DNA from: Chara braunii
Taxonomy: Eukaryota; Plantae; Charophyceae
Length of the DNA stretch: 64,000 nt
Assembly: GCA_003427395.1 (NCBI GenBank)
Contig: BFEA01000025.1
Location: forward strand, 709,676-773,675
Direction of reading: 5' to 3'
Every line of letters starts with the position of its first letter. The stretch's first letter is position 1. Positions 17,364 to 50,949 of this stretch are shown here, piece after piece. The notes below the pieces were generated by a model. It was given only the letters and a program-made list of their open reading frames with translations. It made no database searches and was not told the origin of the DNA. The position numbers and the translations under genes are program-made.

Positions 17364-17378
17364 TGGTATCGAAGCGGG
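17364..17378 (+). promoter_or_regulatory. Primer-binding site, initiator-Met-tRNA-like
   Basis: TGGTATCGAAGCGGG one base after the LTR; resembles the canonical TGGTATCAGAGC. Confidence 0.75.
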
Positions 17379-18890
17379 AACGTTGCCCGCTCCCACCCAC
17401 CACCCCGTACAGCTGTGCAGGCATACAGCTGAGGAAAGCAGCAAAACCCGACATCGGGTTTTTTCGCTGTTTTCGGGCGGTTTTCAGTGAAAACGCAGGG
17501 GAAAAGCGGCGCGTGCAGGAGGTGCCACGTGGCGGAAAAGAGAGGCACCACGATGAGCGCGTGCGCGCAAAGGCCAAGGCCGCCGCACGCACGCGCCCAT
17601 TCTTTAACTCTATTTTTTTTTTTTTTCATCTCTCTTTTTCTTCCCTTCTTTTCTCCTTCCTTCTTGATCTCTCTCCACCTTTCCCCAACCCTCCTCTCCC
17701 CCAACTACCACCACGTCATCCCCCCACCTCCCACTTCATCTTTTTCCCTCCCCCACCTATTTCCTCCTCTTCTCCTTCACTTTTTCATTCCCATTTCCCC
17801 CCACTTCGAATTTTTCTGTTTTTCTTTTTCTATCTTCCTTTTGATTTATCTTTTCTCTCTTTCCAAAAATTCGAAATATCTTCTTTCCCACCCTCTTTTC
17901 TTATTTTNNNNNNNNNNNNNNNNNNNNNNNNNNNNNNNNNNNNNNNNNNNNNNNNNNNNNNNNNNNNNNNNNNNNNNNNNNNNNNNNNNNNNNNNNNNNN
18001 NNNNNNNNNNNNNNNNNNNNNNNNNNNNNNNNNNNNNNNNNNNNNNNNNNNNNNNNNNNNNNNNNNNNNNNNNNNNNNNNNNNNNNNNNNNNNNNNNNNN
18101 NNNNNNNNNNNNNNNNNNNNNNNNNNNNNNNNNNNNNNNNNNNNNNNNNNNNNNNNNNNNNNNNNNNNNNNNNNNNNNNNNNNNNNNNNNNNNNNNNNNN
18201 NNNNNNNNNNNNNNNNNNNNNNNNNNNNNNNNNNNNNNNNNNNNNNNNNNNNNNNNNNNNNNNNNNNNNNNNNNNNNNNNNNNNNNNNNNNNNNNNNNNN
18301 NNNNNNNNNNNNNNNNNNNNNNNNNNNNNNNNNNNNNNNNNNNNNNNNNNNNNNNNNNNNNNNNNNNNNNNNNNNNNNNNNNNNNNNNNNNNNNNNNNNN
18401 NNNNNNNNNNNNNNNNNNNNNNNNNNNNNNNNNNNNNNNNNNNNNNNNNNNNNNNNNNNNNNNNNNNNNNNNNNNNNNNNNNNNNNNNNNNNNNNNNNNN
18501 NNNNNNNNNNNNNNNNNNNNNNNNNNNNNNNNNNNNNNNNNNNNNNNNNNNNNNNNNNNNNNNNNNNNNNNNNNNNNNNNNNNNNNNNNNNNNNNNNNNN
18601 NNNNNNNNNNNNNNNNNNNNNNNNNNNNNNNNNNNNNNNNNNNNNNNNNNNNNNCACTTAAACCTCGGTTAGGGTTTTCTTAGGGTTTTGTAGGGTTTAG
18701 GGTTCCTCAAACCCCCCTTACTTCCCCGTCCTCTTCGGGCACCCTGGACCCGAACCACCCCTCCCCCTTTGACGGCGCCCGTGCTAGCCTTGCAATCGCC
18801 GTTCGCCGCTTTCTACCGCGGACTTCCCCCTACGCCCTCCGCTCACGCGGACCTCTTCTGGCCCCCTCCAGTCCGGTCCGTCATCTCCCC

Positions 18891-20969
18891 ATGGCCGACG
18901 GTGCGTCATACGCCGCCGACACGGCGATGACCACGGCATCGGGCTCCTCACCCGTGTCGGCGGACCAGGGCCATCAGCCCCAAGGGGATCTACACACCCT
19001 CCTCACCTCCCTCCTTGCGCCCATCCAGGCGCAACTCGCGACCCTTGCGCCCATCCAGGCGCAACTCGCGACCCTCGCGCCCTTACAGGCGCAAGTGGCG
19101 ACCCTTGCCGCCGGCATGCAGCAACTCCAGGACGCTGCGTGTCCGTCATCCCCTAGCTCCCAGTCCGGGTCCCCCGTCCTCCGGCAGGGTGGCCACGGCG
19201 GAGCTTCCTCCTCCGTTGCCCCTGACCCGACCATCTTGGTAACTGTCCACGCCCCTAGCACGACGGCCGCCACGAGCCAGGCCCCCCCTCAGTCTACGGG
19301 CGCACCCGCCCAGATCCCGGTCACTACGGCCACGGTACAACAACCCGCTACCATGGTCTCCGCTTTTCCGGGTGCCCCACTTCTCCCTCCCCTTCGCACG
19401 ACCGCAGCGCCACCTGGCTCTCCCCTCTCTAGGATGCCGCGCGCCACTTGTGCGTCCACCCCCTCCACTCTTCCTCCTGCCACCCCTCGATCGACCTACG
19501 TTCGAGGTCTCGCGGACGAGATTGCCCAGCTCCGGGCCGACCTCGCCCTCTTACGCCTTCAGCCACCCCTACCCTCACAGGTGGCCGCGCCTTCGGGCAC
19601 ACCCCCTACCTCCTCTACCCTTCCTTCCATAAAGGCTCGCTTTCCGCGCCCTGCACCCTATACAACTCCTTCCTACCTTCTTCCTACTCCCGCGGTTGCT
19701 GCGACCTCTTCTACCGCAGCACCCTCGCAGCCTGCCGCTGTTGCCACCGCTGCTCCCCCATGCGGCCCGGGCGCACAGTCAGCTGCGCCCCTTTCTCCAG
19801 GACCTGCGCCGACTTACTCAGCTGTGGCATAGGCCTCCGCCCCTCGATCCCCTCGCCGCCAAAACGGTGGCGCACCACTCATCCGCTTGTCGGACATTTC
19901 CTTGTATGACGGTACAGGCATACGCCTGTCTCGGTGGCTGCAGTCTGGCACCCGCACACTCCAGCTCATGGGCGCCACACTCGAGACGTGGGTGGGTCAC
20001 CTCTCCACGCGCTTGCGTGGCGGTCCTTTCGAGGCCTGGGAGGATTTCTATGCCTACTCCCTTTGTGAGGGTCAGACTCCGACCTTCGTGGATTTCCAGG
20101 CGTTCCTCGAGGATCGCTTCGGAGCCCGATACGACGTGATTAACGCCTTCGAGCGTGTCGTCACTACACGCTGGTCCGGCTCTGGTGGCGCTGCCGGCCT
20201 GGATCGCCACATCCAGGTCTTTCAGGACGCCCGCCTCGTTTGCGACGTGGCGTTCCTCCCTGAGGCTGCCCTTATCGATCGTTTCTTGGCCAGCCTTCCG
20301 CTCGAGTACCGCTCCGAGCTATGGCGGTACGAGTTCACATCGGCCCCACAGGCTTACGAGGCCGCCAAGGCCTACCAGCGGATGCGAGCCCGTCTTCACC
20401 CCGCCTCCTCCTCCCAGCCCCAGCGCACGGGCTACGCCTCCTCCTCCTCTCACGACACTTCCCAGCGTCGTTCCCCTTTCCGCGGTCGCCCCCGCCGTTC
20501 CACGCAGTAGGGCCACCACTTCTCGCGCCGCTTCAGCGCGCTGGAGTATGGTGAGCAGGACGCTATTGCCCCACTGTCACCTGAGGGCGACCACAACGAC
20601 GACCTCGATCTCTGCGAGGCCGTCCACTATCACTTAGAGGACTCTACCCTCCCTGCAGCTGAGCGCCTTCAGCTCGTGCTCTCCGCCCTCTCTCGGGCAT
20701 GCTGCCGCCCCTGTCACGGTGGCACGTCGCCCCCCGAGGTCCCTCAGGAGGACCTCCCTCAGGGTTTCGTCCCTCCTCGTGGTGTCCTTTCCCCTGAGGA
20801 GCGTGCGGCTATTCTAGGCCGGCGTCGGTGTTTGCGCTGCCGCTTGGACGGTCATACCTCCTCGCGGTGCCCTTACAATACCGCCCTCGACCGCCACTAC
20901 GCTGACCTTTCTCGTCAGCGTCATGCTCAGTCCCGCCCCGGCGCCTCAGGTCCCCGCGGCGCCTCCTAG
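18891..20969 (+). pseudogene. gag: Gypsy-1 gag (Pro/Ala-rich N-terminus, capsid, CCHC knuckle), two premature TAG stops
   Basis: CLRCRLDGHTSSRC knuckle; the stops at 19830 and 20508 correspond to Gln codons in the Gypsy-2 copy. Confidence 0.88.
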
Positions 20970-20974
20970 CCACG

Positions 20975-23900
20975 GTGCAGTGTACACATGCGCCCTCCTC
21001 AGTAGTGGGCTTCCCGACATCTCCGTCGCGGTTCGCCCCTCTCGCTACTGGAGTTGAGGTATCGCAGGANTCGACAGAGTGTACTCAGCCCTCTGTCGCA
21101 GTANCGTNTGCGCCTCCGCAGACCACCGTCTNCCCTCCTNCCCCGCCGCGACTANCGACGCGTCGAGCCATTCGCTCAGCCCGTTGCAGCGAGCAGCTTG
21201 CTACTCGCGAGGACGTTGTGTCCTCTCTTCTGGACTTGAGCATGCTCCAGGCTCGTNAGGAGCGACTCACCCTCCATGTCNCTGCACTGCGTCGCCTTCT
21301 CGCCATCCTCTCTGACCCTGATCGCACCCTCGCGATCATCCCAATACGACTCGGGACCTCCACGAGGGTGTACTCAGCGCTGTGGGATTCCGGTTCTCAG
21401 GGCGACTTCATTCACCCACGCGTGGTGAAGGAAGCCGCTTACCCACGACAGGGTCTTCGACTCCCATCTTCGTTACCCTAGGGGATGACAAGACTCAGCG
21501 CTTCTTCGATCAGACGGTCATCAACCTCCCCTTCTTCCTCACTCTTGAGTCGACTAATCGCTCCCCGGCGTCTCGTCGCCACCGCTCCTCTGCACATTTC
21601 GATGTGATGGAGACGGGGTACGACTTCATTCTCGGCACTCCGTGGTCTCGTTGGTTCCGCAGCACCGAGACCGATTAGGCGACCAACACTCTCGTTCTCA
21701 AAACGAAGTCTGGACAGACGTATCGCGTACCTTTCATAGGTACCACGACGACACCACGCCCCGATCCTCCTCCCCTGGAGCCTTCAGTACCCACACCACC
21801 TCCCTCTATCACTATCACCTCGCCTCGGCAGTTCGCTCACTTCATTCGACAGGACGACGTCACCTTCTTTATGGTGGACGTGACGGATCTCTTACACTAT
21901 GATTCACCCTGTCCCGACGTCAAGCTCATCCCTCTGGAGCCAGATCCTCCCTCTATCTCCATGACTCCCATCTTTACTTCCGTCTCTCCGCCGTTCGTCG
22001 AGTCCACCCCGCCGTCNCGCGCTGACGCTGACGCTGAGGAACTCACACGATATACGGCAGACTTGGAGCCCGCAGTTCGTGACCTCATCCGAGTGTACCA
22101 CGACGTTTTCCCATCGTCGTTCTCGTACGCCGGCATCCCACAGATGCGTGACGTCGAGCACTCCATTTAGCTTGTGCCTGACTATCGTGTTCACCACCAC
22201 GCACCCTACAGACTCTCGATTCCCGAGGCCACCGAACTCAAGCGTCAGCTTGAGGAGCTCCTGAGACTGGGTTTCATTAAACCCAGCAACTCCCCGTGGG
22301 GTGCACTCGTCCTCTTTGCTCGCAAAGCGGACGAAACTCTTCGTCTCTGCATCGACTATCGCGGTCTCAACCGCTACACGGTTAAGAACAGTTACCCCAT
22401 GCCTCGTTCCGATGAGTTGTTCGACCGCCTAGCAGGCAACCGCTTCTTTACGAAGATTGATCTTCGTAGCGGTTACCATCACATCCGCGTCGCTGCAGCC
22501 GACCAGCCGAAGACAGCGTTCCGATCGCGGTTCGGCCACTATGAGTTTACGGTGATGCCATTCGGCCTCACCAATGCACCCGCTACCTTTCAGAGGGCGA
22601 TGAACGACATCTTCAGGGACATCCTGGAAGAGTACGTTCTCGTCTACCTCCACGATATCCTGGTCTGTAGTCGTACCCTTGAGGAGCACCTCAGACACCT
22701 CTGCGACGTCCTTGACCGCTTGCGCAGACATGGCTTCTACGCCAAGCTGAGCAAGTGCCGCTTTGCCCAACACAAAGTGGATTTCTTAGGACACTACGTG
22801 TCTGACCAGGGTCTCCACATGGACGACGCGAAGATCACTGCTATTGCGGAGTGGCCCGCCCCCACATCCGCCAAGCAGCTTCGCAGCTTCCTAGGCCTGA
22901 CCAACTACTATAGTAACTTCATCTGGGGATACGCTAGGTATTCCTACATCCTTACCTCCACCCTCCTCCGGAAGAACCCACCCTGGTCTTGGACACCCCT
23001 CCTCGAGGACGCCTACCGCGCCCTCAACAAGGCGGTGACATGCGCACCGGTTCTTCACCTACCCGATTTTGANCGCCCTTTTATCCTTACCACCGATGTG
23101 TCATACTTTCCTATAGGAGCAGTGCTTTCTCAGGTCTTCCGCTTCTCTCCTGATTCCTCTCATCCTCGTATCCCTCGCTTCCCAACACCTACCCCTACCA
23201 CTGCTTCCCGACTGACGCCTACTTGTCCAGCTACTGACGAACCTTCTATTGACTATTCTCCTATCATCGCCGAGGACGGCACTGTCGAGTCTCGCTCAGG
23301 TGATTGTCCGATAGCCTTCTACTCCCGTCAGCTCCTGCCCGCCGAGATAAACTACACTGCTGATGAACGTGAGGTTCTCGCAGTAGTTTATGCCGCTCGG
23401 CACTGGCGTCACTACCTGCATGGGGCACCATTCACGGTGCGCACGGACAACTCTGTTGTCCAGGCTTTTCTGACAAAGCCGCAGCTCACTCCTCGACAGG
23501 CACGCTGGTGGCGCAACCTATCCGAGTTTAGTTTCACCACTGAGCACATCAAGGGTGTGACTAACTGGGTCGCAGATGCCTTATCCCGGCGCCCTGACCA
23601 TGACCAGGAGCACATCCAGCTCTCTTCCATCTCGGTCACCACCGTCCACCACTCGGCGATCGACGAGTTTCACACTCAGTACCCCTACTGCCTCGACTAT
23701 CGCGACATCCATGCGACCCTTCGGAGTGGCAAAACCGTACCGAACTACTCTCTCGGGGACAACGGTCTTGTGTACTGGCACGGTTCACAGGGCACCAGAG
23801 AGCCCCATATTTGCATTCCCTCCACTGGACAGCTACGTGTCCGCGCAGTAGCAGAGTTCCATGACCAGGCAGCCGCTGGTCATATGGGCTTCCACAAGAC

Positions 23901-25328
23901 GTTGGCTCGTGTGAGCCGCCTGTACGTCTGGCCGAAGCGCAAGGACTTTGTGAAGGACTACGTCGCAGAGTGTCCCACCTGTCAGGAGGTGAACAGTGCG
24001 AACCACCTACCTTATGGTTTGCTCCAGCCTCTTCCTATCCCGGAGGGTCGTTGGCAGTCCATCTCGATGGACTTTATCGGTTTGCTTCGACCTTCGACCC
24101 CCCGCGGTCATGATGCTATCCTGGTCATCAGCGACCGCTTCACGAAGCGTGCACGCTTTGTTCCATGCCGCTATGCCATCAGTGCACGTGAGGTCGCCGA
24201 CATCGTATTTGACCGAGTCGTGCGTGACCACGACTTACCTCTGACCATCATATCAGACCGTGACCCGCGCTTTACCAGCCGATTCTGGCGACGTCTCCAC
24301 GAGGTGTACGACACTCAGCACCGCTTCTTCTCGTCTTACCATCCTCAGACTGATGGTCAGACCGAGATCACGAACACGACTCTCGGGGATATTCTCCGAA
24401 AGATTGTTCGTGACGACCAGCAGTGGGATCTCCATCTTGCCCACGCGGAGATAGCCTACAACCACGCCGTCTCACCAGCCACGGGGATGTCGCCTTACTA
24501 TTGCGACCTCGGCTACCACCCTCGTGTTCCCGCGGACTTCCTCCGACCGTCACAGATGCACCCCGACACGAGTTGTCCCGCGCTAGATGATTGGGTTGCA
24601 CACATGACGTCGATCATTAAGACCGCACAAAGCACATAGCCGCTTCCCAGACTCGCATGGCAGTACGTGCGAACCGATCGAGGATGGACCATCCATTCAA
24701 AGTCGGTGATGACATGCCTATCGACGCCCGCCACTTACAGCTCGAAGCGGACACGCTTCGCAAGTTTCGGCGTCGCTTCTTTGGACCATGCCGCATCCTC
24801 CAGGCCGTCGGTTCTGATACGGCTTCTAGCCCGGTCAGCTTCCGTGTGAAGCTGCCCGACTACCTATGCCAGACTTGTGTGCACGATGTCTACCACGTCT
24901 CGTTACAGCGTCCTTACTGCAGACCGTCTGAGCGTTTTGCCGGACGACCATACGAGCGCCCTCCACCCATCATGGTGGACGGTCACGAGGAGTTCCTCGT
25001 TTCAGACATCATTGGTCACCGAGTCACCGACGACAACCCTCGCCACGTCGAGTATCTCGTATGTTGGAAGGGTTACCCTGATGAGGAGGCTATCTGGGAG
25101 CCCCTCGAGCACTTGCAGCACGCTCGCATGTTGGTGCGTGCTTATGACCGTGCTCGTCGTGCTGGGTTCACTGCTCCTCCTCAGCCCACTGACCCTCCTC
25201 CTTCTCCTCCGACTGAGGAGACCGCTGAAGTTGAGCCTGCTCCATCTAAGGCAGACCTTCAGCAGCACCCGGATGCTTCTGAGCGTCCACAACGCACTGG
25301 TCGTCGTCCTGCTCGATACGACGATTGA
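20975..25328 (+). pseudogene. pol: Gypsy-1 pol: protease, RT, RNase H, integrase, chromodomain (frameshifts and stops)
   Basis: ALWDSGS protease; LRLCIDYRGLN, MPFGLTNAPATFQ and YLHD (mutated YLDD) in RT; RNase H NWVADALSR; HHCC plus SMDF/SDRD/DGQTE integrase; FFGPC motif; EYLVCWKGYPDEEAIWEP chromodomain. Confidence 0.93.
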
Positions 25329-26477
25329 CTCTGACTTACCTTCCCACGTCTCTGACTTCTCAGTACTCCATCCACATCAGTTTCGCTACTTCAGCTCGTC
25401 GACGTTGCGACTCTTCCTCGACGGCATTCCGGACTTCTCATCGTGGATGTCATCGGCAGCTTCATGGACTTCATCACGATCAGCTCTGCCTACTTCAGAC
25501 GTCACCACTGTCTTACCACTCTACCCTGTACAGTACCCTGCTTGTGTCGCATGATGGTCTCCCTTTAGCCGGGTTCCTCTGAGTTGGGCTCTCCCTTGGT
25601 ATACGCATAGGCATCGGGACCGTAGCGTTGCCGTGGCTTCCCATCTTACGGATCTAGCTCCGACTTCCCTCCCTTTAGGAGTCATTTGCATAATTCCCTT
25701 ACCCATCATCTTTCTACCCTTCGCCGACCCTCACGCCCTAGTTGGGCAGCCCCGCATGCTTCATCTAGGTGCGCCCAGTATACCAGGCTCCCTTGTTCCC
25801 TTGCTTGGTCGACCCTTCATAGCGGTCACCCCTTAGTCGAGCATTACCCGCCCTGATGGTCTATCTGTTAGGGTCATTGGTTCTGTTCGCTCCCAGTTCC
25901 CTACCCTCATTGAGCCTGATGACATGTGTTTTCCCCTGTCACTATGTGTGGATGCCCTTAGGAGTTTTCGACCCCTAGGCTGCATTCGCCACCCTCAGAG
26001 ACCATCCCACCCTTTGGTTTGCGACACACTTCTCATGTGACATATGGTTGTCTTGTTGATTGCTTTGTTGCTCTCAGACTGAGGCTACTGCCTCCGACAT
26101 TTCTAGGATTTAGTTGATCTGCTTTTGTTGTTCTTAGGACTTATACACTAGTCTGTTGTTACCAGACTGAGGCTGGTGCCTCCAACATTCTAGGATCTAG
26201 TTGTCACTACTTTCTGCTTTCCTAGGACATGTACGCTAGTTAGTTGCTTTTGCTTTCCTAGGACATGTATGTTAGTTAGTTGCTTCTACTTTGACTTAGG
26301 CTGTTAGTTGTGACATTGCTGTTTTGTGATATTTTATATCCTAGGTTGCATCGCATGGACTCAGCATAGAGCTTGCTCCGCATCCTAGACTACTCAGGTT
26401 TTCTTTTCTTTGGTAGAGTTCCGCTTCTTGGCGGAAGCATGTTTGTATCCAGGCGATCCTTCACAGACCGAGGATCG

Positions 26478-26898
26478 TATAGCAGACCTCGGGTTGGCCT
26501 GTGAGACCAGCCCCTTGGCCTGTTCTCACAGGCCTGTGTTGTATTCGGGGTAGGCCAGTCCAGGCCGGTACCTCTGTCGGTACCAGCCNNNNNNNNNNNN
26601 NNNNNNNNNNNNNNNNNNNNNNNNNNNNNNNNNNNNNNNNNNNNNNNNNNNNNNNNNNNNNNNNNNNNNNNNNNNNNNNNNNNNNNNNNNNNNNNNNNNN
26701 NNNNNNNNNNNNNNNNNNNNNNNNNNNNNNNNNNNNNNNNNNNNNNNNNNNNNNNNNNNNNNNNNNNNNNNNNNNNNNNNNNNNNNNNNNNNNNNNNNNN
26801 NNNCGTGGGGAGCTGCGTTGTGCCATCTCGCTCCCCCCTTCTTCCTCCATCTCCATCTCTGTCACTAGCGGAGCACCACACCTGGTGGGTCCGCTACA
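26478..26898 (+). repeat. 3' LTR of Gypsy-1 (contains N gap; starts TA rather than TG)
   Basis: TATAGCAGACCTCGGGTTGGCC...GGTCCGCTACA matches the 5' LTR on both sides of the gap. Confidence 0.9.
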
Positions 26899-31539: not shown

Positions 31540-34500
31540 ACAGAGCACGACGCTGACGAGAAAGGTCTGCGTAGTGGCGGTCGAGGGCGGTAGTGTAAGG
31601 GCACCGCGAGGAGGTATGACCGTCCACGCGGCAACACAAACACCCACGCCGGCCCGGAATAGCCGCGCGCTCCTCAGNGGAAAGGACACCACGAGGAGGG
31701 ACGAAGCCCTGAGGGAGGTCCTCCTGAGGGACCTCGGGGGGCGACACGCCAGCGTGACCGGGGCGGCTGCGTGCCCGAGAGAGGGTGAAGAGCGCGAGCT
31801 GAATGCGCTCAGCTACAGGGAGGGTAGAGTCCTCCAAGTGATACAGGACGACCTCGCAGAGATCGAGGTCGTCGCTGTGGTCGCCCTCAGGTGACAGTGG
31901 GGCAACAACGTCCTGCTCACCATACTCCAGCGCACTGAAGCGGCACGAGAAGTGGCGGCCCTGTTGCGTGGAACGGCGGGGGCGACCGTGGAAAGGGGAA
32001 CGGCGCTGGGAAGTGCCGTGAGAGGAGGAGGAGGCGTAGCTCGTGCGCTGGGGCTGGGAGGAGGAGGCGGGGTGAAGCCGGGCTCGCATACGCTGGTGGT
32101 TCCTAGCGACCTCGTAAGCCTGTGGGGCCGATGTGAACTCGTACCGCCATAGCTCGGAGCGGTACTCGAGCGGAAGGCTGGCCAAAAAACGATCGATAAG
32201 GGCAACCTCAGGGAGGAACGCCACGTCGCAAAGAAGGCGGGCGTCCTGAAAGACCTGGATGTGGCGATCCAGGCCGGCAACGCCACCAGAGCCGGACCAG
32301 CGTGTAGTGCCGACATGCTCGAAGGCGTCAGTCATGTCGTATCGGGCTCCGAAGCGATCCTCGAGGAATGCCTGGAAATCCACGAAGGTCGGAGTCCGAC
32401 CCTCACGAAGGGAGTAGGCATAGAAATTCTCCCAGGCCTCGAAAGAACCGCCATGCAGGCGTGTGGAGAGGTGACCCACCCACGTCTCGGGTGTAGCGCC
32501 CACGAGCTGGAGTGTGCGGGTGGCAGACTGCAGCCACCGAGACACACGTATGCTTGTACCGTCATACAAGGCAATGTCTGACAAGCGGATGAGTGGGGCG
32601 CCACCGTTTTGGCGGCGAGGGGATCGAGGGGCGGAGGCCTGTGCCTCGGTTGAGTAAGTCGGCGCAGGTCCTGGAGAAAGGGGCGCAGCTGACTGTGCGC
32701 CCGGGCCGCATGGGGGACCGGCGGTGGCAACAGTGGCAGGCTGCGAGGGTGCTGCGGTAGAAGAGGTCGCAGCAACCGCGGGAGTAGGAAGAAGGTAGGA
32801 AGGAGTTGTATAGGGTGCAGGGCGCGGAAAGCGAGCCTGCATGGGAGGAAGGGTAGAGGAGGTAGGGGGTGCGCCCGACGGCGCGGCCACCTGTGAGGGT
32901 GGGGGTGGCTGAAGGCGTAAGAGGGCGAGGTCGGCCCGGAGCTGGGCAATCTCGTCCATGAGACCTCGAACGTAGGTCGATCGAGGGGTGGCAGGAGGAA
33001 GAGTGGAGGGGGTGGACGCACAAGCGGCGCGGGGCATCCCAGAGGGGGGAGAGCCAGGTGGCGCTGCGGTCGTGCGAAGGGGAGGGAGAAGTGGGGCACC
33101 CGGAAAAGCTGAGACCATGGTAGTGGGTTGTTGTACCGTGGCCGTCGTGACCGGGATCTGGGCCGATGCGCCCGTAGACTGAGGGGGGGCCTGGCTCGTG
33201 GCGGCCGTCGTGCTAGGGGCGTGGACAGTCACCAAGATGGCCGGGTCAGGGGCAACGGAGGAAGAAGTTCCACCGTGGCCCCCCTGTCGGGGCCTGTCGG
33301 GGGACGGGGGTCCCAGACTGGGAGCCAGGAGATGACGGACACGCAACGTCTTGGAGTTGCTGCATGCTGGCGGCAAGGGTCGCCACCTGCGCCTGTAAGG
33401 GCGCGAGGGTCACGAGTTGCGCCTGGATGGGCGCAAGGGTCGCGAGTTGCGCCTAGATGGGCGCAAGGAGGGAGGTGAGGAGGGTGTGTAGATCCCCTTG
33501 GGGCTGATGGCCCTGGTCCACCGGCACGGGTGTGGAGCCCGATGCCGTGGTCATCCCCGTGTCGGCGGCGTGTGACGCACCGTCGGCCATGGGTAGATGA
33601 CGGACCGGACTGGAGGGGGCCATAAGAGGTCCGCGTGAGTGGAGGGCGTAGGGGGAAGTCCGCGGTAGAAAGCGGCGAACGGCGCTAGCAAGGCTAGCAC
33701 GGGCGCCGTCAAAGGGGGAGGGGTGGTTCGGGTCCAGGGTGCCCGAAGAGGACGGGGAAGTTTGGGAGCTTGAGGAACCCTAAACCCTATTAAAACCCTA
33801 AGAAAACCCTAACCGAGGTTTAAGTGGTTAGGGTAGGGTACCGGTGACCTAATCAAGAAAGTAAAATAGCAAGCATAGGGGGCGGGACGGGAGAAAAATA
33901 AATAAACAGCGAGATTTTGAGAGAAAATAAAAATAAATAAAAAAATAAATAAATAATAAAAATAATTAAAGAAATAAGTAAAGAGATGTGAAGGAAAACA
34001 ATATTTATTTTTTTGAAAATTTCGGCAGCATTTCCCTACCCCCCACGGGGTCAAGAATATGCCAAGGGAAAAGGAGAGACCAAGGTGAGCACACTAGGGA
34101 TGCCGCAAATAATATTAAAAAAAAAAAATTCAAAAAATAAATAAAGAAATAATGAACAAATAAATAAGTAAATGAGTGTGTGAGGAGGTGGGGAGAAATG
34201 GGTTATCTGATTTTTCAAAAATTTTGGCAGCATTTCGTTACCCCCATGGGGTCGAAGTGTGTCGAAAAGACTAAGTAAGAGAAAATCAGAAAATTTCGGC
34301 AGCACTTCGTTACCCCCACGGGGTCAAAACGTGTGCCGAGAGCAAGAAAGGCTAACAACTAATCAGATTTAGGATTGCCGCCAAGAAATTCGAATTTTCA
34401 GAATAAATAAAACTAAATAAAATAAATTAGAAAATAAGAAAAGAGGGTGGGGAAGAAGATGAGAAAACTAACAACTAATCAGATTTAGGGTTGCCGTAGA

Positions 34501-36049
34501 GAAAATCGAATTTTCAGAATAAATAGAAAAATAAATGAAATGAATCAGAAAATCAGAAAAGAGGGTGGGAAAGAAGAGATTTCAAATTTTTGGAAAAGAG
34601 AAAAAATAAATCAAGAGAGAGGTGGAAAAAAGAAAAACAGAAAAATTTTCGAAGTAGGGGGGAAGGGGAATGAAAAGTAAGGGAGAAAAGAAAGAAATAG
34701 GTGGGGGGAGAGAAAAAGATGAAGTGGGAAGTAGGGGCGGATGGTGTGGTGGTAGTTGGGGGAGAGGAGGGATGGGGAAAGGTGGACAGGGATCAAGAGG
34801 CAAAGAGAAAAGAAGGAGGAAGAAAAGAAAAAAAATAAAGAAAGGAGAGTAAAAGACTGGGTGTTGGGAGAAAGGTGGGATGGGGAAAATAAAAGGAGGA
34901 GAGAAAAAATGCAGTAGAAGGTGGGGGAAAGAGAAGGGGTGAATAAGAGGAGAGAGGAGAGGTAGGGAGAGTGGGTTAGTAGAGGGAGAGGGGAGAAGGG
35001 AGTGATACCTGGCCTTTGGTGTCTCCAAGGGCAAAAGGTACACCAAGACCGGGAGGGTCTTGGCCTTCACTGCAGCAAGCCAGCTGCAGGGGAAAGGGGG
35101 CTGAGATCTTCATCAGCCCCTAGCAGCAACTGTTCTGCAGATGTGCAGATCTAGGGTCTGCTGTGTGAGCAGACCCTCACAACTGTAGAGCATCCCCCTA
35201 AGCAGGGGGGTCTTCCGTTCCAGCACCAGCTGCCACGTGGCAGGGCAGATGGCCACGTACCCAGCCAACAGCAGCCAACGGCGGGGGGGGGGGGGGGGTA
35301 AATAGCCAGCACGACACCTCTTTAACACGAGCGTGCCGTGTTACAACACCATGTACACTCTATGGCGAGTGTGTTAGCGGGGTGCTTACGCACACGCATG
35401 GCACAGCAGCCACCTGGGTTCAAACCCCAACAGCAGCAGTTGCATCTCGAATTTTGATAATATAAATTCGGGAGCGGGGCGGGCCAGGGCAGCGGGGCCG
35501 CATGCGGCGGCCTTGGCCTTGGCGATTGCGCGCACGCGCTCGTGGTGGCACCTCCCTTTTTTGCCACGTGTCACCTGCAGCATGCGCCACTTTTCTCCCT
35601 CGTTTTCGCTGCGAAATACCCGAAAAACACCGAAAAAACCCGTTGTCGGGTTTTGCTGCTTTTCTGCCTGTGCGGGCTGTTGCCCAGCTGTACGGGGTGG
35701 TGGGAGGGAGCGGGGATCGTTCCCGCTCCGATACCAATGTAGCGGACCCACCAGGTATGGTGCTCTGCTAGTGGTAGAAATGGAGACGGAGGAAGAAGGG
35801 GGAGCAAGATGACGCACATCTCAGCTCCCACGCAGGACTCCAACGCACGTACTCCAGAAATGTGCAAGTGAAGAATGAGCCTGAAAACAGACAATGGTTG
35901 GGGTATACCCCAGCGGATTGAAGAGACTGGACTGGACTGGCTGGTACCGACAGAGGTACCGGCCTGGACTGGCCTACCCCGAATACAACACAGGCCTGTG
36001 AGAACAGGCCAAGGGGTTGGTCTCATAGGCCAACCCGAGGTCCGTTACA
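31540..36049 (-). mobile_element. Gypsy-2: 3'-truncated copy of the Gypsy-1 family (5' LTR, PBS, leader and gag only)
   Basis: LTR 35738-36049; PBS TGGTATCGGAGC directly inside it; gag ~33590-31540 is highly similar to Gypsy-1 gag; pol and 3' LTR are absent. Confidence 0.9.
35738..36049 (-). repeat. 5' LTR of Gypsy-2 (312 bp)
   Basis: TGTAACGGACC...GGTCCGCTACA on the minus strand; carries ~43 bp absent from the Gypsy-1 5' LTR. Confidence 0.9.
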
Positions 36050-39401: not shown

Positions 39402-39603
39402 TAAGCGAAACTGGCTGAGGCTGCCACGATAACTCCGGGTTGAATTGTGAGGTCCCCGGCCTCGTTCTTTAAACATTTTGAAATAAAAGACACATGCTTT
39501 CAAAAAAACAACAACAACAAAAAAAAAAAACAACAAATCCAGAGGCCGGGGACCTCACAATTCAACCCGGAGTTATCCCGGCAGCATCAGCCGGTTTAGC
39601 TTA
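39402..39603. repeat. Inverted repeat formed by the shared 62-nt 3' motif of LINE-A and LINE-B
   Basis: 39402-39463 versus the reverse complement of 39542-39603: 57/62 identical by manual alignment. Confidence 0.92.
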
Positions 39604-40156
39604 TGATGTGCAGAGAAACTGCTGAACAAAGTAATTGCTTCTAACTATTGACAATCGTTGTATCTATTATGAGGGCCGGGATATATCATTACAGCCTAGC
39701 TTTCTAACAAGACACAACTTCTCACCAAACAGTTGGCAATGTATTATCCTTGCCGAAATCTATACTTATGCCTAAGTCTTATATGCCGAAAGAGAAGGGG
39801 AGGGGGGGGGGAGGGGGGGTAGGATAGGAAGACGAGAAGGGGAGGATAGAGGGGGGTTGGAGAAAAACACGGGGTGAGAGGGGGGAGGAGAGAAGGGGGT
39901 GTAGATGATGAAAAGCAATCCTAAAATGACAGGCCTAAGACGGCCTGGCCTCGGCCCAAACCGACCGAGAGGAGACGACTGTACTCCTTCTCTAGTTCCT
40001 GGACACTCTCCTCCCTGCCCTACCCTCTGCAGCCTACTGAGACTGCCTACTGAAACCGAGTGCCCTGGTTATAAATGCTACAAACTGGGGATGGTGACAG
40101 GGGGGGGAGATCGAGATGGGGGGGAGATAAAAGGGATAGGAGGGGGGTGGCCTTTC

Positions 40157-43100
40157 TCAACTCAGAAGCCACGGGGAGATGACTAGCTTGCCCTCGTGAG
40201 TAACCGCTGCCAATTGGTTGTCCCTGACCCACGTAACCAGGAACCAGTATCTGCCTCGTCTCGTTTGCCCTCTCGCTGCTTTCCTGTGCCAGTCGACACA
40301 GATCATTGTTCTGATCCAAGATTTGATTTTAAGTATCAGAACCGCATCTGCCGTCCACTGTTGCTTGAAGAGGACATTGTTCCGGTTCTCCCAGATGGTC
40401 CAGATAATGATAGACCGAATGGCTTGTGCAACATAACCTCTTCCTGTATGCTTGAACCATGTGTCTGGGATACATCCTAGAGTGCCCATGCTTCATCCCA
40501 GCGCAGCAGGGGGCCCACGAATCTGATCCAGTGTCTCTCCCACCATTGCCATATCCACTTAGATGCCGGGCAGGCCTAGAAGAGGTGTGTTAAAGTCTCC
40601 TCCTCCCTGTTGCTGCAGCGTTTACATTTTGTTTCAATCTCCATACCTCTCTCGAACAGACGAACAACACAGGGGACCGCCGCATGTGAAAGCAGCCACA
40701 AGAGGCCCGCTAACTTCTGGGAGGATAGAGTAGGGAGCTGCGCCCAAAGGGTTAGAAGCTCATTTTCCGTATCCTTTGGTCCTGTGTGGCATTCCTGTTC
40801 AAAGCGCGTGCTACCTCCGTGGGAAGGTCCTGGTCTTTTGACAAAGGAGCTCTGGCCAGCGAGGTTTGGAATTGATGGAGGAAGACTCTGCGTCCCGGTG
40901 ATTGTTCCCAGTAGTGGCCCTGTGGATCAACACGTAGTTGTTGCAGTGGTATACCATCTGCCAGGATGTCGTGAGTGATGCCTCTTTCTGAGGTTCTGGT
41001 GTCTACCCGAATGATCCGCAGGCTCTGAGATGGGGAGACTGCGATGTCTCCTCGCAGCTGAAGGCGTGTAGGACGTTCCGGGTCAGTGGAGCTCACCCAT
41101 TCCTGAGCGGACCATGTTTCATCGTCTTGTTGGTCCCGGATCCGAATCACGGTGTGTTCTTCTTTGTTGGCTGCGTCGATATACCACTCCCCTTCTGTTG
41201 GTGTGTTCCCCTGGAGTAGCTCGACTCAGTGGGCGGGGATGGCTGCGATAAGTTGTTGGAGCCTCTGTGGGATTAGTTGCAGTCTTCCTAGCTTCCGCTT
41301 CAGCTTGCTTTCTTCCAGCCAGCAGTCTGTTTCCTCGTCCCAAAGATATTGTATTCTCGTTACTCCCTTCTCCGTCCATCGCCTGCCGAAAGAACCTGGG
41401 GCGGCAGTAGCAACAAATTATTCGTGCTGTTCATTCAAGATTTCTGGATTGTCGAACAGGATCTGCTTCAGCACCTCCCCCTTGGTAGTTGGCTGCTTCG
41501 TGTACGGGGGGGCAAGCGCCCGCCAGGCTGTCCAGCAGGCACCTGCCACCTGGGACTGCAGTTGCCTGCGCATGTAGGAGGTCATGAAAACTGTTGCCCA
41601 TACGTCCTCTTTTCTTGAAAGTGAGAGTTCCTGTTGTAGCAGATACTCCAGAACTGGCTGCCAAGTCCTGCATTCGGACTGAGTGGCTATTTTGCTGAGC
41701 CATTTGGTGAGGAGGGCAAGGTTTTGCCTGTATGGGTCTATGATTCCCAGGCCACCCTGGTTTTTGCCTGAGGCGACCTTGGACCAAGAGCACTTGGACA
41801 AGAATTTCTGACCTTCTTGAGCTGTTGGCTTCCACAAGTACCTTGCAGCATCAGCGGCGAGGAGTCTGGCTGTTGGTTTGGTGAGGAGACAGACCGCAGC
41901 CACGTGCCAAAGTTGAGCAAAGACTACAGATGTAAGGAGGATAGCTCTGCCCAACAGAGAAATTCCCACCGCTACTCTGCATCGTTGAATGCTGGCATTT
42001 GTCTTGGAGCGGAGGATGGCTTGCTGCTTCGGACGCGCACTTGTCAGGGAAACCTGCATGCCCAGGTATCGTTCCGATACCTCGGGGGGGATGCGCTTCA
42101 TGCCCAAGTCAAGGCTTGACATTTCGTAGTCCGCCGGGAGAAAAAAGATAGATTTCTCCCAGTTGACTTGGGCCTCCAAAAGTTGTATGTAACCGTCCAA
42201 CAACGACTTGGCTTCGTGAGTAGACTCTGGGGTGGCTTCCATGGTGAGCAGCAGATCATCAGCAATGGCTCCGGTCAGCATAATCTCCCCATCCCCGAGC
42301 TCGAGGCCTCGTATCCGCGGGGAGGCCCGGAGCGCATTGAGGGGGATTTTCATCTGGAGCCTGAAGAGCAACGGCGCCAATGGGCAGCCTTGTCGGAGAG
42401 AGCGTGCAAGAGTGAAGCTCTGCGAAAGGAATCCGTTGACATTGACTTCTAGTGTAGCAGTGGACTCTACGTAAAGTTCCCGGACCCAGTGTCGGTAGTT
42501 GGGGCCAAACCCCATGTGCTCCAATGTTGCCAGGACGAACGACCAGTTTACCCGGTCATAGGCCTTTTCAAGGTCCAACATGGCAACCAACACTTGTCTG
42601 TTCTCCCTCCGTACGATTTCCAAAGCTCCAGCTGCCATCAACATGTTTTTGGCAATAGATCTGCCCTGGACGAAAGCACCTTGGTCCGTGTGGACCAGCG
42701 CAGGCAGGTGAGCGGTGAGTCTGCGTGCAAGAAGCTTGGCCAAAATTTTATAAGACACGTTTAGGCGGGAGATAGGGCGCCAGTTTCGTACATTTCGTTT
42801 ATCACCTTTCTTGTAGATTAGTGTGATGATGCCTAATTTCATGTCTTTGGTCAAGGAACCTCCTTGCAGTAGGCTGTTATAGCAGTCAAGGAGAACAGGT
42901 CCAGTATGTTCCCAAGTTGCCTCGTAGAACTCAATGGGGAGTCCGTCTGAACCAGGGTTCTTCCCCATCACCATACTTTTGACTGCCTGCAAGAGTTCAT
43001 CCAAGGTGAACGGCTCTTCTAGCTGTTGGCTGGCGGCTTCCGGTAGTTTGGTCTGTGTATGTTGCCTGAGATCGGATTCTTCTATCAACTGCTGCAGCGG

Positions 43101-44407
43101 CAGATCTGGTTGCCTCCTTGAGGTGAGAATGTCTGTGAAGTAGTTAAGCGCATATTCTCCAATTGCAGTAGATTCCTTTGCTGGCGCCGCCTCTTGGTAG
43201 AAGGGATGCAACATCTCTTTCATGAGACTGTGTGCTCTCGGCGGGCAAACACGTTGAAAAGTCTCTCTTGACATTCTGTCCCCAACCTGCATGCCTTTTT
43301 CTTGCGCTCTATTGGCCCACAGTACCTGCTGTGCCACTTGAATTTCTTCCAGCTTCTGCAACCATCTATCTCTTCGGTGCTGCCAATAGAGCTCAATTAA
43401 TGGCTGTTTGTTAAGCTCCTCTTCAGCTTCGGCAATCATGAATCTGCATTCTTCTTCCTCCTTTCTTCTGGCCCTTGCCTGCACTCTTGAGAACACGTCA
43501 AGTGCACGTGTAACAATTTTGAATCTCATCTGTAGCCAATCTCCTTCCGAGTGAAAGTCCCCTTTCGTGCTTTGCCAACTGGTCCAGTGGTCTTCCACCC
43601 ACTTCAATATATCTGGGTCCTTCAACATCTCGGTGTTCAAACGGAAAGTACCCGGACCCCTGGCCATCTGGTCTGCAAGCTCGAAGCTGGCAATGAGTGG
43701 ACGGTGATCTGGCATAGACTCGATAGATAGGTCGACCGTGGTAAGGGCTCCCATGCCGCGCCAGAGGCCAGGACGAGGTCTAACCTGCGCTTTGGGCGCG
43801 GACAATCACCGGTTCTCTGAGATGAGAACCAGGTGTATCCTGGCTCCGTGGGGTGGGTGGTTCTATACGTATCCACCAAATTGCGCTCCCCCATGAAGTT
43901 GGCAAGAGAGATGGTATCCGCTTTCCCTGGGGCAACGTCGGGGGAGTCCATGCCCGGGCTGAGAGTCACGTTGAAATCTCCTGCAAGTATCAGATTTTCC
44001 GCCAAAGGTGCTATAGCAGGGAGTTCCTCCAAGAAGGAGCGGCGTTCTGCAGGTTCAGAAGGTGCGTAGATCGGCATGAGGACCAATATTTCAGCGCCTA
44101 ACTGGATCCTGCACCAGGCCCAATGGCCCCAGATGTCAGCATCTTGTTCGAGCAGCTCAAAGTCAAGATTTCGGTGGAATAAAATAGCACATCCACCCTT
44201 GGTACCGTCTGCCGGGGCCCAGATTTGTGGGCCTCTCCACCATCCGTTGAGTTGGGCGATCTTATCTTCGTCAAGCTTGGTCTCCTGCAGTAAAATGACC
44301 TGCAGCTTGTGGTCGTGCGCCCATGTCTTCAGTCGGGCCTTCTTGAAGCGTCTCGTGGTCTCACCTAGCCCTCGAATGTTCCAGGTGCCCAGCTTAAGAC
44401 TGGTCAT
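40157..44407 (-). pseudogene. LINE-B ORF2 (APE endonuclease, RT, C-terminal Cys/His motif); a few frameshifts and stops
   Basis: GTWNIRGL, LQETK, GDFN, RLD, PDH; KNPGSDGLP, WRPIS, DLEKAYDRV, RQGCPLAP, AIADDL; CKRC...ETLTHLF*ACP; IWENRN. Confidence 0.92.
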
Positions 44408-47400
44408 TGGAGGATGCTGCAGCGGTTGTGCTTTGGATCCGCAGTACTTCTTCGTTTGCCTGTCTTCCAAGCCTTGACCTTCGGGGTGTATCTGTTTCTG
44501 CTGTGTTGGACCAAGGTGCCCGGAGCAAATTCCTGAAGCCCGCCAGGTGAGGTTGCTTGTCCGTGGCCAGCGTGGTGCAAAATTCGGCTAAAAGTTTGGT
44601 GTTTACATCCTCCGTTAGGAACATCTCTTGCAACTCCTCCGTTGTGGTGGTAGCCAGCCAAGTGGAGGGAAGCCATTCTACGCCTTGCGTGGCAAGTAGG
44701 GATGCAGTGTCCAGATTGATCTTGACGTCGATAACTCCGATGGAGAAATGCCAACTACCGCCTGCTGCTGCAGCTACCATTTTCCTGCCAACACGTATCC
44801 CTGGTATGAGCCTGAAAGGGAAGCGGTCGGCGATGAAAGTTGCTGCCACCGCCTTGACTGCTTCCTTCGTTGTTGGAGAGGCACTTACTGTCACTGTTGG
44901 GATCGCGAGTAATCCACACTCTGTTCTCCTCGCCATGAACCTGGTACCCTGTGGTGATAGCATAAAGCAAAGAAGGACAAGTTGGTGCCTGATGGTTCCC
45001 ATAGCTGGCCCGCTGGTGGATGGCTGAGCAGGAAGAGCGGTGCGGTGGGGCACAGGGGGGAGTGGTCCTGCAGGAACTGAAAGTTGTGAGGGGGGTCTGG
45101 TGGAGGGGATGGCAAAGAAGTCAACTTCTCCCTCCTCCTCCTCCTGTGTGATTTGGTCCTCGTCATCTTCATTGATGCGGCGCTGCTTCACTGGTGTGCG
45201 AAGCACCAGTCGTGGGTCTCGCATGGTTGCATCTGCAGCATATCCTCCATTGTCCGCTGAGGCGCCTGACCTGGAGCTGCCACCTGCACTTGCCTGCATA
45301 GTCTGCATAGTCTGCTGCTGCATTGTTTGGGCTCCGTGTGCCTGCTGGGTTGATGGGTGTTGAGTTGTGTGTGCAACGAAAGTGGGGTTTTGATATGTGG
45401 TGACGTAGTGCAGGGGGGCCTGGGGGTGGGGATTGGGGTTGGTAGGACTAGGTAATTGGGTGTGGCTGGTGGTAGTGATGATGGGGGGGGGCGAAGAGAA
45501 CGTGGCTTGTGGATGCCGTGGCCCATGGGTGGGGCTGGCGAAGGTGTGTGGCCAGGGGTTGCGTTGTCTGAGTGTTGTAGAGAGGGGTCCCCAACTGCAG
45601 CATCGGAGGGGGGGGGGGGTCTCGCCACAGAGATGAGTGGAGGGGAGCGAATAAAAGCCGCTGCTTGCAGGTTGGTGGTGATGGGGTTGCAGTGAGTCGT
45701 TGGGGGGGGATAGGACAAGCCTGCGGGGGGGAGGGAGCCGATGAGAGGGATGGTGGAGGGGGCTCCATAAGCACCTAGGTGGTGGTGAATGAGAGGTGGG
45801 TGCTGATATGGTGGCGGGGGAGCTTGGAAGGGGACAATTGCGTTGTGTGGAGCACTATGTAACCGGGTGAACGCGCTGAACGCGCGTTCACGTTCATCTG
45901 CGCGCGTTCATACCCCCCGAGGCAGCGTTCACTCGCGTTCAAGCGCACTGCGCGCCACGTGGCACAAAAAAAATAATGCGCCCCCGGGGGACGCGTGCGT
46001 GTGTTGCGGACTAGGGGGTGACGGGCCTCGTTCAGCAAACCCCAAAAGTGCAAAAACAGACCCCCCTGGAGGCCTACCCCCCCTGCCGCATCTCACCCCA
46101 CCTTATGAGGCACCTTATGAGGCTCATGTGTCAAGAGTCCATTTTTTTTTTCCGGGGGGGTGGAAGAATCCCCCCGATCACAGCTCAGACAGCCCATGCA
46201 GGCCATCTGAAGGGTCGTCGCAGCCATGTGGCGCAGACCCCACTCCAAAATCAAGGCAGGCAGTGAACATGAGTAATATCAGGAGCTGGCCTAATATATA
46301 CTCAATATTCGAACTCAGGTCTGTGTTCCAGCAGTTATGGGTTTCTCACGTAGCCAGGCCCTGTTGGTCTATCCACGTGATTCTCAGGGCTTGGCTGCAC
46401 TACTCACCAAATGTGCAAAACTAGAATGAATCTTCTCCAGAACATGGAATAATACGCCGCCATATGTTTTTTTTTTTTTTTTTTCATTTTTTGCAGTGAC
46501 CCTAAAAGAAAAACACGTCATTCTCAGGGCTTGGCTGCACTACTCACCAAATGTGCAAAACTAGAATGAATCTTCTGCAGAACATGGAATAATACACCGC
46601 CATATGTTTTGTCTTTTTTTTTCCTCGTTTTTTGCAGTGGCCCTAAAAGAAAAAGGAGAAAAAAAAGGAGAAAAAAAAGACAAAACATATGGCGGCGTAT
46701 TATTCCACGTTCTGCAGAAGATTCATTTTAGTTTTGCACATTTGGTGAGTAGTGCAGCTAACCCCTGAGAATCACGTGCAGAGACACAGCCCAGCTACGT
46801 GAGCAACCCATAACTGCTGAAACACAAACCTGAATTTGAATTTTGAGTATATATTCGGCCAGCTCCTCCTGCTCTTCATTTATACTGTTGGCCTTCAATT
46901 TGGGGGGGGTCCGCGCCCCATGGCTGCGAGGATCCTTCAGAGAGCCTGCATGGGCTGTCTGAGCCGTGTTAGGGAGATTCCCCCACGCCCTCCCCCCCCA
47001 AAAAAAAAGGAGCAATCACACACANNNNNNNNNNNNNNNNNNNNNNNNNNNNNNNNNNNNNNNNNNNNNNNNNNNNNNNNNNNNNNNNNNNNNNNNNNNN
47101 NNNNNNNNNNNNNNNNNNNNNNNNNNNNNNNNNNNNNNNNNNNNNNNCCGCCGCTCCCCACACTGCCCAAAGCCCCCCCCCAGCCCGCACAACCCCCTGC
47201 GCAAACGCGTCAAACGCGTTCACCGCCGTTCACATAACGCGCGTTCGAAAGCTGAACGTGAAACGCGCGGTAACATAGGTGGAGCGAAGCTCTGGTTCGC
47301 ACCCGCAGAAAGGGCGGAGTGGATGTAGTTTGGGTCAGCTGTGGGTGCAGGGTGAAGTTGTACCAGGGGTCTGTAGTGTGGATTGGGTTGATAGCCTCCA

Positions 47401-48531
47401 GGTGCAGTGGAGTGTGTGCTGTCGATGGGGGGGGTAGAGGGAGTGGGTGAGTGGGGGGGGGTGCTGTATGTGTTTGTTGTGAAGGGTGCTGTGTGGGGGG
47501 AGGGTCGGGAGTCCTGCCTAATTGTCTGTTCCGGTTGGATTGCGGCTGCAAGGGAGGGGGGGACGCCCCCTTCCTCCTCCCTGGCCTCTTCCCCTTCCTC
47601 GCCCTCTGGTTCGTCTGCCTGGAGGCATCGGTTCCTGAAAGCGGGGGCAATCTGGGTCAAACTCGTCATGGAACCACCATAAACACTGCTGACAGAATAA
47701 CGTGTCTTGGTTTGCGAATTGCACTTGCATTGCCTGCCCGGTCGGGCGTCGGAGAACCATCCACTCCTTAAATGTATCTCTGACACACGGGTCGCAATCA
47801 ATTTTAACGTTGCCTAATCGAGGTTCATCATCTTCTCGCCTATTTGGGGGATGCATGTGGATTATGGGGCCCATCAGATTCTCGACTGCAAACTTGAGTG
47901 AGAAGAGAGCTCCTAGGGGGATACGAAGCGCAATGATGCGGTATTTCGCCGCCGCATCAGCTTTGCGTAGTTGGTCCAGCTCTTGCTGGGTCATCCACGG
48001 GTGGAATGTAACTTTGATTGGTCCTTCCCTAGATGGGATGAAGTCCTGCCCTCTATTAAGCATCTATTGGGCGATCCTCTGCGTCCGTGCAACGTAGGAC
48101 ATGACGTTTGGACCTTCGCCGTGCTTTCGACCTCTCCTCTGGGAGGGGTTGAAGTTGGGGTCTTGGTACCAGGCGTCTTCGAAAATTCGGATGAACTGTT
48201 CTCTTTGAGCTACCGATAAATTAACTGCTCGTGTGTCGAAGACTATTATGACTGTTCGTTCTTTGAGCCAAGCGACCGTGGTTGCATCGACTTCAGCGTT
48301 TAAATTAAGGTAGTTTACTCCATCCACGATTTCGGTACTACCATGGGAGAACGAGGTCTCCGGAAACATGCCATCATCATAGCATGAGTCTAGCAGTGTA
48401 TGAATTCGTGTCATGTCGGCAGGCGGGATGGCGGCTTGTGTTGACGGACCCGGGCGAATTGCGTGGGGATTTGGAGGAGGTTCCCCCGAAGGGGGGTTGG
48501 GTGTATACATCCCTGAGGATCTGTGGGGCAA
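44394..48531 (-). pseudogene. LINE-B ORF1, interrupted by the 45855-47278 element
   Basis: ORFs 48064-48531 and 47518-48063 are in frame across one stop; CQQCLWWFHDEFDPDC zinc-knuckle-like motif; Pro/Gln-rich linker; C-terminal ORF 44394-45323 overlaps the ORF2 start. Confidence 0.75.
45855..47278. mobile_element. Non-autonomous TIR DNA transposon with 8-bp TSD (hAT- or P-like) and foldback interior
   Basis: TIR CTATGT(A/T)ACCG; flanks GTGGAGCA (45847-45854) and GTGGAGCG (47279-47286); subterminal AACGCG repeats; long internal inverted arms ~46140-46470/46680-47010 plus a direct duplication ~46380/46520. Confidence 0.8.
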
Positions 48532-49861
48532 GAACTGATTGTGTGATGTGGTGATGACGTCAATCCGAGCGGTCAGAGACTGACTATATCTGTCGGGGGG
48601 GTGGGTTGGGCTGGTTGTGTCTGTTGTGGTATATGTGTTGATGACGTAGGGCGGTGGGAAGTAGAGAGTGGATAGATGTATATACGGTGAGGGGATTTAG
48701 TGATGACGTGTTCGGGTGTCGGGGGTCAGAGTCGGGGTCGGGGTGGGGAGGTCAGCATCGGTGTACTACGGGCGTGGTCGGGGCCTGGGCAACGAGGGGG
48801 GGAGAGATGGGGCATTGTGTAGGAAGGGAGAGGAGGTGCTAAAGAGAAAAAAGAGGAGGTGTGTGGGTATCGTAAGTCGATGGGGGATGGGAGAAAACTC
48901 GGTACGTATGACCGATTAAGACGAACCGAACGGACAGTTTGACCGAAAAACCCCCACGAGCGATTTGAACGTCTAACCAGATAACCGAACCGAACGTGCA
49001 AAATCGACCAACGCGAAAACATATACGGGAAGGGTGGGGGGGGTGTAATTACGTACCCCCGAAGATTACGAACGCGTAAGGAGGGGTGGAGGGGGGGGAT
49101 GGTCCGTGGGGTTATAGTAAGGTATGGGGGTGTGACTTATTTGGAGGTCGAGCGATGTGGTATGACCGCAGGGAAAGAAGAAGAGGAAGTGTGTAGGTGA
49201 AAGGGATGGGGGGGGTGAGGGGGGGCTGAGACGATGGTGCGTATGGGGAAGTGGATGAAGCACTTCGAACTCCCCGGGGTTCCACGAGTACAAGATTTTG
49301 TGCGACTTGGACGGGGGTCGAAGGTCAGGGTCGAGGATCAGGGTTGGGGCCAAGATAAGTAGGGTTGGTCTTCAATGGTGTAGGAAAGGAGTGGAAGGGT
49401 TGGGACAACGAGAGAGGAGGTGGGTTGGTGTGACGAGAAGATGAGGGGTGTCGAGAGGAAGAGGAGTTATACTTGCTTGAGAGTGTGGGGCATCTTGGTA
49501 TGCTTGCCAATACCCGTGGCAGCCATCCGTAGAGTCTTGGTTGGACTTTTCTCCAATCGCCCTCAAATGGTGCACCCTCGAGACTTCATATGTCGCATCA
49601 GGGACAGGGCGCGGGCGCCTGTCCCGTTAAATATTGGTACTCATGTCATAAGCTGTATCAATTGACTCGCCTACTCGTCTCCATGTCCCCCCGTCTACTG
49701 CTGGCAGAGGGTTGACCTAGCGATGGTGCTAGGTGGGATGGTGGACGATGACCACTGCTGCCGGCTGCGTGCCTTGGTGGTGGCTGGCGAGGCCAGTCCT
49801 CCTGAACCGGCGGCGCAACGAAAGACTGCTCCGCGCCGGTCGTGACGCCTCCCCCACTTCT

Positions 49862-49898
49862 CTACACTTGATCTTAGCCAAAAGGCCGAGAAAGGTAT
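49862..49898 (-). ncRNA. U2: U2 snRNA nt 1-37 fused to the putative LINE-B 5' end
   Basis: Minus strand ATACCTTTCTCGGCCTTTTGGCTAAGATCAAGTGTAG matches the canonical plant U2 5' end, then switches abruptly to non-U2 sequence. Confidence 0.88.
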
Positions 49899-49926
49899 TG
49901 GGGGGTACTTCCCCCGCCAGTGCGTC

Positions 49927-49938
49927 ATTTTATATATA
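49927..49938 (-). promoter_or_regulatory. TATA-like box ~30 nt upstream of the U2 start
   Basis: Minus strand TATATATAAAA ends ~28 nt before U2 +1, the spacing of plant snRNA promoters; no clear USE, and the context is AT-rich. Confidence 0.35.
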
Positions 49939-49984
49939 ATAAATAACAATAATAATGTATATTTATCCTTTTTATTTTTATTTT

Positions 49985-50817
<833 letters not shown>

Positions 50818-50949
50818 TTTTATTTTTTATGCGTGATTTCTTTTTATTTTTTTTTATTTTTTATTTTTCTTAATCGGAAAACTAAGAACTAACTCAGGAC
50901 GAACATCCACTTACTGCCTATAAACTCAAGGATCCGGAATTGGGCAAAA

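Follow-up and report, generated by a model that had tools for sequence, protein, structure and literature searches.

Keno and Utopia are non-LTR retrotransposons that target U2 snRNA genes; Keno belongs to the Tx1 clade and encodes an APE-type endonuclease, and Utopia has a restriction-like one (RLE; PMC4640811). In both, U2 resumes at nt 39 on the downstream side of the element, and what defines each family is a large set of copies sharing this exact 3' junction, with U2 from nt 39 onward (PMC4640811). snRNA and LINE sequences can also be joined by template switching, as described for U6/L1 and related mammalian chimeras (Buzdin 2002 and Garcia-Perez 2007, as cited in PMC4494074; PMC4476161). 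The classic form is a whole U6 joined at the snRNA 3' end to a 5'-truncated L1. U2-derived heads on SINEU elements are a further case of snRNA 5' addition attributed to a template switch (PMC4494074).

We analyzed a 64,000-nt stretch of the charophyte alga Chara braunii (the window; assembly GCA_003427395.1), in which a LINE, termed LINE-B, directly follows the first 37 nt of U2. Its U2 sequence is broken within 1-2 nt of the branch-point-region site shared by Keno and Utopia, and LINE-B is an APE-type LINE, as is Keno. The locus differs from both in that there is one LINE-B copy, whose 3' flank lies in an N gap, and in that ten related elements are found outside U2. The restriction-like (PD..D/ExK) endonuclease that Utopia carries C-terminal to its reverse transcriptase (RT) is lacking in LINE-B, which has an N-terminal APE domain instead, and Keno is known only from animals, whereas the host of LINE-B is a charophyte alga.

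The locus also shares features with the snRNA/LINE chimeras. The snRNA is at the 5' end, on the same strand, begins at nt 1 and is fused directly to the LINE, a single poly(A) closes the 3' end, and snRNA retrocopies made by LINEs abound in the host genome. The locus departs from the classic form in its internal U2 break at nt 37, its full-length LINE and its charophyte host; a complete snRNA 3' end and a truncated LINE, both absent here, are the usual form of such chimeras and not a strict requirement. With SINEU it shares a U2 5' fragment on the 5' end of a retroelement, but in SINEU the head is passed on through whole families of short non-coding elements, and here we find a single autonomous LINE copy. 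Judged from its sequence, LINE-B is a member of a non-targeted L1-like clade, and its junction with U2 most probably arose once, as a side product of LINE reverse transcription, and is not the work of a U2-hunting element.

The U2 fragment and the anatomy of LINE-B

The features of the locus, in window positions and in the 5' to 3' order of LINE-B, are as follows (L numbers denote fetched loci).

49960-50248, minus strand: dispersed repeat R, upstream flank; second copy at L002 16358-16630, inverted arm in the window at 50734-50864
49928-49938, minus strand: TATA-like run, -40 to -30 from U2 +1
49862-49898, minus strand: U2 snRNA nt 1-37, exact, ending GTAG in the branch-point recognition sequence
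48532-49861, minus strand: LINE-B 5' UTR; homology with the 5' ends of nine Chara relatives over the first ~150 nt
47518-48531, minus strand: LINE-B ORF1-like region in two in-frame pieces, with a stop at 48064-48066; 63-77% identical to ORF1 of relatives
44394-45323, minus strand: LINE-B conserved region preceding the endonuclease; 54-65% identity to relatives, no Pfam family
43637-44470, minus strand: LINE-B APE-type endonuclease (Exo_endo_phos), N-terminal; Pfam E 1.4e-20
41418-43805, minus strand: LINE-B reverse transcriptase ORF (RVT_1), frame-shifted relative to the endonuclease ORF
39535-41417, minus strand: LINE-B decayed C-terminal region and 3' UTR, with the conserved 3' motif of the clade at 39542-39570
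16575-39534, plus strand: LINE-A, a later insertion splitting the LINE-B 3' UTR; target duplication AAATCCAGAGGC
31540-36049: inverted 5' part of the same Gypsy family as the next element, interrupting the LINE-A RT
17094-26898: Ty3/Gypsy element in the LINE-A 5' UTR, with TG..CA ends, ~267-bp LTRs and duplication GCAAA
16492-16574, minus strand: last 40 nt of the LINE-B 3' UTR (16574-16535, with one copy of the LINE-A target duplication) and A43 (16534-16492)
16067-16491: N gap hiding the LINE-B 3' flank
Copies of the 3' motif: window 39435-39570; L001 22544; L004 11904; L006 17060 and 17329; L007 14956 and 15732

Read on the minus strand from 49898 to 49862, the fragment corresponds to U2 nt 1-37 with zero mismatches. 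A pattern search with a 29-nt core matched it without mismatch (chance expectation 0.00), and cmscan aligned it to model positions 1-37 only, with 36.5 bits and an E value of 1.6e-05; this score lies under the gathering score because the piece is short. The break falls at GTAG/TA, within the branch-point recognition sequence. The fragment is identical to the same stretch of U2 retrocopies at other Chara loci, is oriented along the LINE-B strand and has no poly(A) of its own. G37 of U2 abuts LINE-B nt 1 at 49861 with no spacer and no shared bases, and the junction shows no microhomology (LINE nt 1-5 are AGAAG, U2 nt 38-42 TATCT). Position 49861 is taken as LINE-B nt 1 because nine related LINEs align from there; the 5' end of L008 starts AGAAGTG, as does LINE-B, and the alignment of L005 begins at nt 2. 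The 5' end of L002 had suggested that GTAG is LINE sequence, which we rejected given that L008 and L005 set nt 1 at AGAAGTG. The 3' part of U2 is absent from all readable sequence in the window and beside the gap at 16067-16491.

A sequence-only reading of this DNA had described an unmutated U2 nt 1-37 adjoining the LINE-B 5' end on the same strand, broken at GTAG/TA, and had assigned 48532-49861 to the LINE 5' UTR. The exact match and cmscan agree on the fragment, the alignment bears out the break, and the 5' UTRs of nine relatives, which align from nt 1-10 after U2, establish the assignment. That reading also placed a TATA-like box ~30 nt upstream of U2 +1, and such a run was found at -40 to -30, where it reads TATATATAAAA. 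Its position for the LINE-B poly(A), which it saw meeting the N gap at 16492, is confirmed by the LINE-A duplication together with the 3' layout of the clade.

The bases just upstream of U2 nt 1 end in ...AAGTACCCCCCA. The TATA-like run sits within a 61-nt AT-rich stretch (49899-49959), beside repeat R. We considered the run as a part of R and rejected this: three R arms diverge right after TTTTCC (~49960), and the 61 AT-rich nt are thus flank and not R. A search with the land-plant USE found no USE-like motif near -70, and the U2 promoter of Chara may differ from it. The upstream flank is unlike a land-plant snRNA promoter.

Between ORF1 and the endonuclease, LINE-B is repeat-rich and contains an N gap (47025-47147). 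Tandem and inverted repeats lie by this gap at 46154-46994, where LINE-B is ~1 kb longer than LINE-A. A search of solved structures returned human L1 ORF2p as nearest to the LINE-B RT and the human L1 endonuclease as nearest to its endonuclease, with R2 much more distant than human L1 ORF2p, and zf-RVT is present in relatives of LINE-B. LINE-B is therefore an L1-superfamily element. It combines APE and RT domains with an A43 tail, and target duplications in its clade (LINE-A and L005) begin with A. The RT ORF has its best protein matches only in Chara braunii, and an atlas search with LINE-B gave generic RT clusters only. Among annotated Chara proteins there is no close copy of LINE-B, the best RT identity being 69%. 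Exact look-ups of ten window ORFs, meant to reach an independent assembly, returned no match.

The far end of LINE-B was reconstructed by excising LINE-A, whose 12-nt target duplication AAATCCAGAGGC is found at 16563-16574 and 39535-39546. The LINE-B 3' motif (39570-39542) then joins 35 more bases, followed by A43 (16534-16492). LINE-A was thus inserted in the LINE-B 3' UTR, which puts the LINE-B tail and A43 at 16574-16492, and A43 directly abuts the N gap. The 29-nt 3' motif CCGGGTTGAATTGTGAGGTCCCCGGCCTC is common to all LINEs of the clade; in most copies a variable stretch of 35-45 nt separates it from the poly(A). It is also where LINE-A and LINE-B meet, tail to tail. A third, distant RT, ~30% identical to that of LINE-B, is encoded on the plus strand at 10140-11219, which makes at least three distinct non-LTR elements in the window.

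Related LINEs and snRNA retrocopies in Chara

Eleven Chara braunii loci from the same assembly (~300 kb), which contain the closest annotated relatives, were compared with LINE-B. Full-length relatives are present at nine of them, and RT identity to LINE-B is 58-69% across the seven loci compared. A sense U2 piece at the 5' end was seen in none of the nine full-length relatives, nor in LINE-A, and an Rfam scan of the fetched relatives detected no sense U2 at the ends of any of their LINEs. LINE-A was inserted into a LINE 3' UTR, not into U2, and the LINE at L005 has an ordinary 14-nt target duplication, AAATGGACGATTTG. Both duplications, of 12 nt for LINE-A and 14 nt for L005, start with A. 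A 10-nt match at L006 resembling a target duplication was judged compatible with chance.

Some of these loci have peculiarities of their own. At L005, AAATGGACGATTTG is located at 7313-7326, before the LINE 5' end, and again 3.8 kb upstream (3464-3541), directly after a LINE 3' motif and poly(A) and beside N gaps; this arrangement probably reflects a mis-ordered contig in the scaffold. At L004 (11904-11975), a LINE 3' motif, 35 nt and only four A's run directly into a full-length LINE of the same orientation, beginning at its nt 1; this could have arisen by a template jump from one LINE RNA to another or by insertion at a tail.

Matches to snRNAs are numerous. Rfam identified ten (U2, U6 and U6atac) in the ~300 kb of fetched loci and two full U2 matches in the window; counted as U2-derived pieces, there are three in the 64-kb window and two in the fetched loci. 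One copy of U2 nt 1-70, with A15 and the target duplication GAATTGAA, bears the signature of LINE-mediated copying. The abundance of snRNA retrocopies made by LINEs in this genome offers cheap routes, without targeting, to the picture seen at LINE-B.

U6 and U6atac retrocopies lie downstream of LINE poly(A) on the same strand at L001 (22544-22841) and L006 (17376-17620), spaced 11 to ~100 nt from it. At L002 (6990-7150), an antisense U2 retrocopy (~nt 1-87 with an A-rich tail) and a full-length LINE-B relative are arranged head to head, the retrocopy lying 65 nt upstream of the LINE 5' end. The minus strand of the window at 265-773 holds ~2.3 copies, 94% identical, of a 222-bp unit, each consisting of a variant U2 nt 1-56, an A-run and ~165 nt of other sequence. 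The repeat has the appearance of a truncated U2 retrocopy with subsequent tandem duplication.

Origin of the junction

The sequence-only reading had offered two explanations, a chimera and a U2-targeting element, of which the first holds up as plausible and as the best single explanation, and the second found no support. We put at close to an even chance, if slightly under it, that the locus is a single U2/LINE chimeric retrocopy from one retrotransposition event. Priming at a nick in the target, the LINE-B RT would have reverse-transcribed the complete LINE-B RNA through to its first base. It would then have jumped to U2 snRNA, either to a fragment ending at nt 37 or to the open branch-point region of a whole U2, and would have continued to U2 nt 1, after which the cDNA would have been attached to the chromosome. 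The start at U2 nt 1, the shared strand, the direct fusion to LINE nt 1 and the single A43 tail argue for this sequence of events, as do the frequent snRNA retrocopies, the lack of a land-plant USE, and the nine relatives and LINE-A that are not in U2. snRNA 5' additions of this kind have precedent in the U6/L1 chimeras and in the U2-derived heads of SINEU (PMC4494074). Against a template switch stand an acceptor point internal to U2 and a junction without microhomology. A target duplication flanking the chimera would be out of view, its 3' side lying in the N gap, and a chance insertion into a U2 retrocopy would give the same visible picture.

Such an insertion is a third reading, which the sequence-only reading had not listed. 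Here, a full-length LINE-B would have entered an older U2 retrocopy or pseudogene without any targeting, with nt 38 onward now hidden in the gap; the remainder of U2 would follow A43, perhaps preceded by a duplicated nt ~24-37. We regard this as a substantial possibility that stays below even, about as likely as the chimera. U2-derived pieces are common in the window and the fetched loci; a rough estimate from their density puts them at ~0.1% of the DNA, which would give on the order of one or two chance hits per ~62 Mb. An acceptable nick site, T/AAGA, is present 14 nt upstream of the junction, a spacing in keeping with the 12-14-nt, A-first duplications seen for LINE-A and L005. Blunt 5' junctions with no microhomology are the usual outcome when a full-length LINE inserts, which also speaks for an insertion into a retrocopy. 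Such an insertion does, however, need a coincidence of place and strand, the second half of U2 is not seen, and nothing in the readable sequence calls for this reading.

Targeting of U2 genes near nt 37-39 by the endonuclease of the LINE-B family, as in Keno and Utopia, with the fragment as the upstream half of the gene, fares much worse, and we consider it very improbable. The one feature that favors it is the position of the break, within 1-2 nt of the Keno/Utopia site. The TATA-like run at -40 to -30 can be counted on the same side, but the run lies within an AT-rich stretch by a repeat, and no land-plant USE-like element is found near -70. The annotated relatives of LINE-B reach at most 69% RT identity, and targeting confined to LINE-B's own family keeps a slight chance, though nothing supports it. 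Against a U2-targeting L1/Tx1-like family stand the nine full-length relatives and LINE-A, all in non-U2 DNA and two of them with ordinary target duplications, and Keno has been reported only from animals (PMC4640811). That LINE-B represents a low-copy L1-like family of a streptophyte alga, whose endonuclease has converged on the U2 site of Keno and Utopia, with the remainder of a U2 gene in the gap beyond its poly(A), is a slighter prospect still.

We think it very unlikely, too, that the U2 nt 1-37 head is inherited within a LINE-B subfamily, having been acquired once by a master copy through a template switch or an insertion into U2, as a SINEU-like head or by 5' transduction. The U2-derived heads of crocodilian SINEU elements were added once and then inherited (PMC4494074), and the fragment starts at U2 nt 1, like a transcript from a U2 promoter. 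Yet none of the nine relatives has a trace of a U2 head, and LINE-B itself is seen as one copy. No internal promoter is known in U2 nt 1-37. The least probable account, an assembly artefact of the draft scaffold, can appeal to its many N gaps and to at least one fetched locus that looks mis-ordered, but the sequence around 49862 is free of N (the closest gap being 47025-47147), and U2 has no sequence in common with the LINE 5' end by which an assembler might be misled.

Implications for LINEs in Chara

U2 promoters are positioned upstream of, not within, the gene, so the U2 piece at LINE-B would be without a role. As it stands, the U2-LINE junction is an oddity of repeat biology that shows no sign of function. 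APE-type elements that target U2 are, to our knowledge, found only in animals; a U2-specific LINE-B would matter much more, and the evidence speaks against it. If the junction is a template-switch product, it would provide a clean case, outside animals and fungi, of a LINE RT leaving its own full-length RNA for a spliceosomal RNA, and would add to the picture of Chara braunii LINEs copying snRNAs unusually often.
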